Shown piece by piece: positions 9,544-10,288 of a stretch of DNA of 64,000 nucleotides. Location of the stretch: positions 1-64,000 of the IMG/VR virus record IMGVR_UViG_3300032516_000001; one strand, given 5' to 3'. The translations under genes were made by a program, and so were the position numbers. Each line of letters starts with the position of its first letter. The first letter of the stretch is position 1. The notes under the pieces were generated by a model, which was not told where the DNA came from, ran no database searches, and was given only the letters and a program-made list of their open reading frames with translations.

Positions 9544-10041
9544 ATGACGACACTAAACCAAGCACTTAGGCAGATTTCGGCTATCAAGGGGAAGATCAGG
9601 GAGACTGAGGACCGAATGGTCCGTTCCGCAGTCTATGAGGAAGATAAGCCCCCGGCCTACGTATTTGCCACGCTCATGGAGCTGCGTACCAAGCTCGTGG
9701 ATGATCTTGTAAAGCTCAAGACTGCGACGGCGATAGCTGAGTCTCGAGTACAGCTCAAAGACGGTAGGTTCCTGTGTGCAGCGGTTCGTGAACTCGCTGA
9801 AATCAAGGCTAGTATATCGTTCTATGAAACTCTTCCCACCTTGGATCAGGAGAAGGTGACGGAGGAGACATCTGAAACTGCATACGTCAAGGGTGAACTC
9901 ACGACGATTCCTAAGACTATAAAAAGGAACTGTCCTTTTCCGGAAGTGAAAAAGGCTGAGTATGTCGAAAGCCTTAAGGAGCGATTTGCTACCTTGAATG
10001 CCGAGGTGGAAGCACTAAACCACACGACGGCAGTCGACTAA
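9544..10041 (+). CDS. Coiled-coil protein, DIP1984-like (tentative)
   Basis: MTTLNQAL..I..EE.KP..LKTA.A.A....LNAEVEALNHTT pattern recalled for this family. Confidence 0.6.
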   Translation: MTTLNQALRQISAIKGKIRETEDRMVRSAVYEEDKPPAYVFATLMELRTKLVDDLVKLKTATAIAESRVQLKDGRFLCAAVRELAEIKASISFYETLPTLDQEKVTEETSETAYVKGELTTIPKTIKRNCPFPEVKKAEYVESLKERFATLNAEVEALNHTTAVD

Positions 10042-10045
10042 AACT

Positions 10046-10288
10046 CTCCGGGTTGTTTCGTCTCTCTTCGGAGGGGCGGCGCGCTCGGCGGGAAGGAACG
10101 GGGTATCGAAGGCATAATACAAGGTTTTCCAATTATAAAATTGGAAATCACCATCGAACTCGATGCTGGTACTGGTTCCGCAGATAGCGTCCAGCTCTCA
10201 GCGGATAGCTTTTCAGCACACAGCCAATAGCTCTCAGCTATCAGTACACAGCACATAGTTAGCCTTCGATTACCCCGTCTCCTTTTTT
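10046..10288 (+). ncRNA. Candidate structured ncRNA/3'UTR with period-7 YAG repeat loop
   Basis: UUCG hairpin 10059-10078; closing stem 10098-10113 with 10262-10278; two internal hairpins; 11 repeats at 10181-10258; U-tract at the end. Confidence 0.7.

Follow-up and report, generated by a model that had tools for sequence, protein, structure and literature searches.

A protein gene of huge, uncultured phages is followed by a structured RNA with AGC motifs at seven-base spacing: a putative protein-RNA module

The 64,000-nucleotide stretch of DNA analysed here (the window; positions 1 to 64,000 of the IMG/VR record IMGVR_UViG_3300032516_000001) carries a gene for a 165-aa protein. A structured RNA follows directly 3′ of it at 10044-10288 (Table 1). 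After the stop codon come a hairpin with a UUCG loop, a long closing stem, enclosed hairpins, an array of 11 AG(C) units and a U-rich tract. The initial annotation had described these elements, and each of them was found to be present as described. Two points were corrected. The conserved core of the repeat, previously given as a C-n-n-n-Y-A-G register, is A-G-C followed by n-n-U-Y, and the gene product, previously taken for a coiled-coil protein, is predicted to be a four-helix plus beta-hairpin protein with the DIP1984 fold.

Table 1. Positions of the features within the 64-kb window
Feature	Position	Strand	Description and basis
Protein gene	9544..10041	+	ORF from ATG 9544 to TAA 10039-10041; 165-aa protein with predicted DIP1984/DUF6847 fold (four helices plus a long beta-hairpin), member of a mostly phage-borne family
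P0	10044..10092	+	20-pair hairpin in the MFE fold, directly after the stop codon; core hairpin 10059-10078, UUCG loop 10067-10070
P1, 5′ strand	10093..10118	+	Long closing stem; pairs with 10258-10284 (25 pairs in the MFE fold); core ACGGGGTATCGAAGGC (10098-10113)
P2	10123..10152	+	Variable hairpin (UUUUCCAAUU / AAUUGGAAA) in the MFE fold
Small hairpin	10153..10164	+	CATCGA/TCGATG; overlaps the conserved CGAYRCYGRY motif that precedes the array
P3, 5′ strand (predicted)	10165..10174	+	Pairs in the MFE fold with 10242-10252 (units 9-10 of the array), so that the array becomes a closed loop
AG(C) array	10186..10259	+	11 units; AG at 10186, 10193, 10200, 10207, 10215, 10222, 10229, 10236, 10243, 10250 and 10257 (7-nt spacing with one 8-nt step)
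P1, 3′ strand	10258..10284	+	Core GCCTTCGATTACCCCGT (10262-10278)
U-rich tract	10279..10288	+	CTCCTTTTTT, at the 3′ end of P1, giving a terminator-like end
Coiled-coil ORF	10343-10591	+	82 aa, directly after the RNA
PTH2	11091-11435		Peptidyl-tRNA hydrolase, about 1 kb downstream of the module
tRNA	15604-15679	+	Anticodon UUA, an ochre (UAA) suppressor
RtcB	22920-24332		RNA ligase, about 13 kb away
Mom-family proteins	32485-34338 and 55014-56528		Two large proteins with a Mom-family and an MTES_1575 nuclease-like domain

The features exceed chance expectation. The RNA folds at −108 kcal/mol with z = −7.8 on the + strand, whereas the − strand folds less well. The chain of 11 AG is the longest period-7 chain of any dinucleotide in the 64-kb window, while 40 block shuffles gave maxima of 5-8. 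Tandem Repeats Finder does not call the array, which fits units that share only their register. The protein-RNA module is a GC-rich island (0.44-0.56 at 9500-10300) in an AT-rich stretch (0.31-0.39 at 8900-9500), suggesting that it was acquired as a unit.

Matches of the protein to known families are weak and below the curated cutoffs: Pfam DUF6847 (PF20935) with E 6.6e-5 and 23.3 bits against a 27-bit cutoff, and NCBIfam DIP1984 (NF038048) with E 6.9e-6 and 26.3 bits against a 70-bit cutoff. Still, 51 of 63 relatives hit PF20935 at E ≤ 0.01. With an alignment of only five sequences, AlphaFold2 gave a poor model (pLDDT 66), whereas the 63-sequence alignment resulted in a very confident one (pLDDT 97.3, pTM 0.77) with four helices and a long beta-hairpin at residues 104-129. 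The only significant PDB neighbour of this model in a Foldseek search is 3KDQ, the C. diphtheriae DIP1984 protein annotated as of unknown function (E 1e-4, TM 0.75-0.82), and a sequence profile finds the same entry at E 0.002. The phage family is a divergent branch with 15-17% identity to 3KDQ and has its own conserved residues (C130, N152, E156, H160), which differ in 3KDQ, the one canonical sequence inspected. No RNA partner is reported for the bacterial proteins. The family is about neutral in charge (median pI 6.7, net charge 0). However, the N-terminal helix is basic and conserved (R9, K15, R24) and the C-terminal helix carries conserved polar residues (N152, E156, N159, H160, T162). The model places a beta bridge between residues 2-3 and 163-164, so that the two termini lie together.

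A profile search of 1.8 billion representative proteins found 297 relatives, 199 of them at E < 1e-10 and nearly all 160-215 aa long. The family is mostly viral, was found mainly on huge-phage contigs and occurs on contigs of 240-440 kb, including an NCBI assembly of an uncultured huge phage. BLAST of the DNA and of the protein against cultured phages (INPHARED) and plasmids (PLSDB) returned no match, and hence no cultured host or annotated relative; plasmid GQ904227, annotated with 'septicolysin', is not part of the collection searched. In the literature searched, no paper mentions DUF6847 or DIP1984, papers on 'septicolysin' only repeat an annotation, and searches for jumbo-phage ncRNAs and for heptamer repeats found nothing equivalent. 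Covariance-model searches against Rfam 15 at the gathering score gave only tRNAs in the window and in 20 homologous loci, and a search at E ≤ 10 on 9900-10400 gave only noise.

We next asked whether homologues of the protein, as had been set as a test of the initial annotation, carry a periodic array inside a covarying stem. Four close homologues (70-79% identity; loci L003 to L006) have an uncalled gap after the gene. In each gap the whole RNA aligns, with invariant AG(C) columns, differing spacers and covarying stems. Distant homologues (28-38% identity to the window protein), collected from metagenomes, IMG/VR and MAG contigs, show the same plan: stop codon, closing stem, variable hairpins, the CGAYRCYGRY motif, which is conserved family-wide, the AG(C) array and the 3′ strand of the closing stem, often followed by U's. 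P1 starts 1-35 nt after the stop codon in most loci and further away in a few (for example loci L054 and L049). AGC chains of 3-9 units occur in the 3′ flank of nearly every locus, against 1-2 units upstream and 1-3 units within the gene itself. A sequence-only covariance model of the core gives exactly one hit in the window (10156-10263). It also gives one hit, on the same strand downstream of the gene, in every locus with a family protein and enough 3′ flank, i.e. in 32 of 32 loci (28-79% protein identity), including two loci fetched afterwards and not used to build the model. No other neighbouring gene family recurs beyond PTH2, which lies downstream of the module in the window and in three other loci. 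The coiled-coil ORF that follows the RNA in the window has no counterpart in L004 or L005, where the RNA is followed by the homologue of 10708-11094, whereas L003 and L006 have short ORFs at that position.

From 274 units, the logo of the array is A, G, C (74%), n, n, U (60%), Y (65%). On the family-wide alignment there are nine homologous slots, arranged as three, then a variable linker, then six. AG occupancy per slot is 79-100% and AGC occupancy is 100% in two slots, while the spacers vary freely. The window's clade has one extra unit at each end and a short linker, which makes its array an almost perfect 11 x 7 nt. Insertions are tolerated between particular units: a hairpin of about 28 nt lies between two array units in the close homologue L005 (8664-8700), and similar insertions occur in loci L037/L040 and L047.

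The closing stem is strongly supported by covariation. In a six-member GC-rich clade, 14 of its 25 pairs show compensatory changes and 96% of cells are paired. For the whole structure, 0 of 500 shuffles reached the observed values, and slid controls fell to 32-47% pairing. The same stem covaries in the window clade and is found again in a third clade. Many G-U pairs would be C-A mismatches on the other strand, which places the RNA on the gene's strand. An ungapped outer-stem score against shuffles was significant in only 15 of 30 loci taken singly, and covariation was the better test. P0 shows compensatory changes and an invariant CTTCGG among the five aligned loci of the window's clade, the only ones searched for it. 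Every homologue has its own hairpin or hairpins at the position of P2, with different sequences. Support for the inner helix P3 is limited to within clades: one compensatory change distinguishes the window from L003 (GTACTG/CAGTAC versus GTATTG/CAATAC) and an equivalent helix occurs in the GC-rich clade, but on fixed columns of the family-wide alignment it was 45% paired, no better than shuffles. No covariation supports regular pairing within the array. Partition-function folding does not show the array to be clearly single-stranded either, as mean P(unpaired) is 0.42 against 0.35 for the rest of the RNA, and the G and C of the units are mostly predicted to be paired. P1 is followed by the U-rich tract in the window and, by reading of the flanks rather than a formal count, by a similar tract in roughly 60% of homologous loci, whereas the GC-rich clade lacks it; the stem encloses about 140 nt and a simple terminator scan does not call it.

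The observation reported in the initial annotation is thus confirmed. Its interpretation is partly supported: a conserved protein-ncRNA module, undescribed in the resources searched, is borne out by the homologues, whereas oligomerisation, binding of one repeat per subunit and the proposed roles (autoregulation, type III TA-like or RNP scaffold) remain conjecture, and the match to the 11 triplets of TRAP does not hold across the family. We consider the locus a self-contained two-part module of huge phages, in which the 3′ part of the protein's own transcript is a structured RNA of about 190-300 nt. In this view, P1, possibly with an inner helix, holds a loop of about 65-75 nt that carries 9-11 AG(C) motifs. 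Newly made protein would bind the array of its own transcript with one protomer (or one binding site) per unit, reading the A and G bases and ignoring the 4-nt spacers. As the closing helices bring the two ends of the array together, the RNA would wrap a closed oligomer of about 9-11 sites, forming a defined ribonucleoprotein that might feed back on its own mRNA, sequester the protein or act on a host target. That the RNA is real, structured, strand-specific and, in the loci that carry the protein, strictly co-inherited with it is shown by the comparative data; binding, oligomer state, stoichiometry and ring geometry are inferred, and the biological role is conjecture.

Several lines of evidence favour this reading. 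One protein family and one RNA family are strictly linked, the conservation pattern is that of a read-out motif rather than of base pairing or slippage, and there is usually no room for a separate promoter, so that the RNA is the 3′ part of the mRNA, which favours binding in cis. On the other hand, there is no experimental or structural evidence that a DUF6847/DIP1984 protein binds RNA or forms rings, the protein family is not basic overall, and a unit count that differs between clades (9 versus 11) together with a variable linker after slot 3 is awkward for a ring of fixed size. We assign this mechanism a probability of about 0.45. A still more tentative extension is that DIP1984-fold proteins form closed assemblies of about 9-11 sites reading an AG(C)-N4 array on a stem-closed loop of their own 3′ UTR. 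This would be a third, independent invention of TRAP/HutP-style triplet-repeat reading, would give a first function to DUF6847 and would define a new ribonucleoprotein of huge phages.

The nearest precedent at the RNA level is HutP from Bacillus, which reads only the A and G of XAG motifs separated by 4-nt spacers (period 7) and wraps the RNA on a symmetric oligomer (PMC2425495). The AG-N5 spacing of the nine slots fulfils this motif criterion. In contrast, no HutP domain was found, the base after AG is usually C, and the 9-11 motifs lie inside a closed stem 3′ of the protein's own gene in phages, whereas HutP, a different family and fold, reads 3 + 3 motifs in a 5′ leader flanking a terminator stem to prevent termination of a downstream operon. 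TRAP of Bacillus, proposed initially as the analogue, reads one (G/U)AG triplet per subunit around a ring of 11, a number shared only with the window's clade. Its spacers are 2-3 nt rather than 4, it is a beta-sheet 11-mer whereas the present protein is predicted to be a helical bundle with a hairpin and matches only DUF6847 in Pfam, and its target is a 5′ attenuator rather than a 3′ element. Multivalent sponge RNAs such as CsrB/RsmZ likewise present many copies of a short protein-binding motif (GGA), but there the motifs sit in separate hairpin loops without strict spacing, and the genes are not linked to that of the partner protein. In type III toxin-antitoxin systems (ToxIN, CptIN, TenpIN), a protein gene is paired with a repeat-containing RNA that binds the protein stoichiometrically. 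Their repeats of about 34-45 nt lie upstream of the gene and are cut by the endoribonuclease toxin, none of which is seen here.

Among alternatives, the array might be a decoy or sponge that titrates a host factor or another phage factor, for instance a multimeric RNA-binding regulator or a sequence-specific ribonuclease, with the DIP1984-fold protein working alongside it, for example on the same pathway. Multivalent short motifs in one RNA are the hallmark of sponge RNAs, the module sits in an accessory region of small unknown genes with signs of horizontal acquisition, RNA-repair and translation-rescue genes (PTH2, RtcB) lie in the same region, and the protein is not basic overall. We regard this as unlikely, because linkage to one particular protein family in 32 of 32 loci across very different phage backgrounds and GC contents is more simply explained by direct partnership. 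Moreover, the phages are diverse and their hosts unknown, yet the motif is invariant, so that any host target would have to be near-universal. Somewhat less likely still is a cis-acting 3′ UTR element that serves as terminator, 3′-exonuclease barrier or self-contained tertiary fold and regulates the stability or expression of its own mRNA without protein on the array. The position a few nucleotides after the stop codon, the stem often ending in a U-tract, the up to 25 GC-rich pairs of P1, which would block 3′ exonucleases, and the predicted pairing of the G and C of the units are compatible with it. However, a terminator or stabiliser does not need nine invariant AG(C) motifs in a fixed register, covariation for regular pairing within the array is lacking, and the GC-rich clade has no U-tract.

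A type III-like toxin-antitoxin pair, in which the repeat RNA neutralises a toxic protein by direct binding, is improbable. The pairing of a protein with a repeat-containing RNA without another conserved partner, and the 'septicolysin' label of bacterial relatives, which is only an untested annotation, speak for it. Against it, the units are 7 nt long, the RNA lies downstream of the gene, the fold is not endoribonuclease- or ToxN-like, and PADLOC gave no toxin or defence hit for the window protein and the protein P0002 and only a weak HamA1 hit (E 0.0023) for the protein P0005. In addition, the family was found mainly on huge-phage contigs and not in the plasmid collection. An origin by chance or slippage, a DNA-level iteron array or coding by read-through is refuted by the comparative data as far as these methods allow, although heptamer tandem repeats and (CAAGCNN)n arrays are common in other viral contigs and in-frame reading through the TAA gives about 62 further codons in the window. 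Spacers differ in every unit and between homologues, near-identical units or two complementary repeat arms are absent, and the G-U-containing covariation is strand-specific. Homologues have indels that are not multiples of three and use all three stop codons (TAA 14, TGA 10, TAG 7), and the read-through frame stays open no longer than the other two (median 26 versus 26 and 22 codons).

If the pairing is what it appears to be, it gives the first functional handle on DUF6847/DIP1984, a widespread protein family of unknown function. It adds a new, well-supported structured RNA class absent from Rfam 15 and would show a new way of building a defined protein-RNA particle, with a periodic 3-nt code at 7-nt spacing held in a closed loop. 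The module is compact, comprising one 165-aa protein and one RNA of about 200 nt, and might serve as a programmable multivalent RNA-protein scaffold. Because it occurs in many huge phages, in accessory regions, it may also point to an unrecognised step in phage-host conflict.

Two generic AGC-N4 pattern scans of IMG/VR, the second of them partial, recovered the window itself but otherwise only unrelated heptamer repeats without a family protein nearby. Two IMG/VR contigs (L011, 3300045936_000120, and L017, 3300045933_000102) contain dozens of dispersed hairpins with (UCAGCNN)n on one arm and (NNGCUGA)n on the other, for example at 11701-11785 of L011. They occur on both strands across 12-14 kb. 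Their units resemble those of the present array, but the architecture is different and no family protein was found in the fetched regions. Small IMG/VR contigs of 4-18 kb (L058, L060, L065-L067, L070, L071, L074, L078, L083 and L086) carry one to three arrays of (CAAGCNN)n each, with 6-12 units and a variable dinucleotide. Several of these end right at a TTGACA...TATAAT-like promoter, and they could be DNA iterons or UP-like arrays, or heptad-coding repeats.

Elsewhere in the window, the predicted ochre suppressor tRNA raises the question of whether this phage recodes UAA in some genes, although the large ORFs inspected read normally with the standard code. One of the two Mom-family proteins also has a treble-clef zinc finger, and both may be DNA-modification enzymes.
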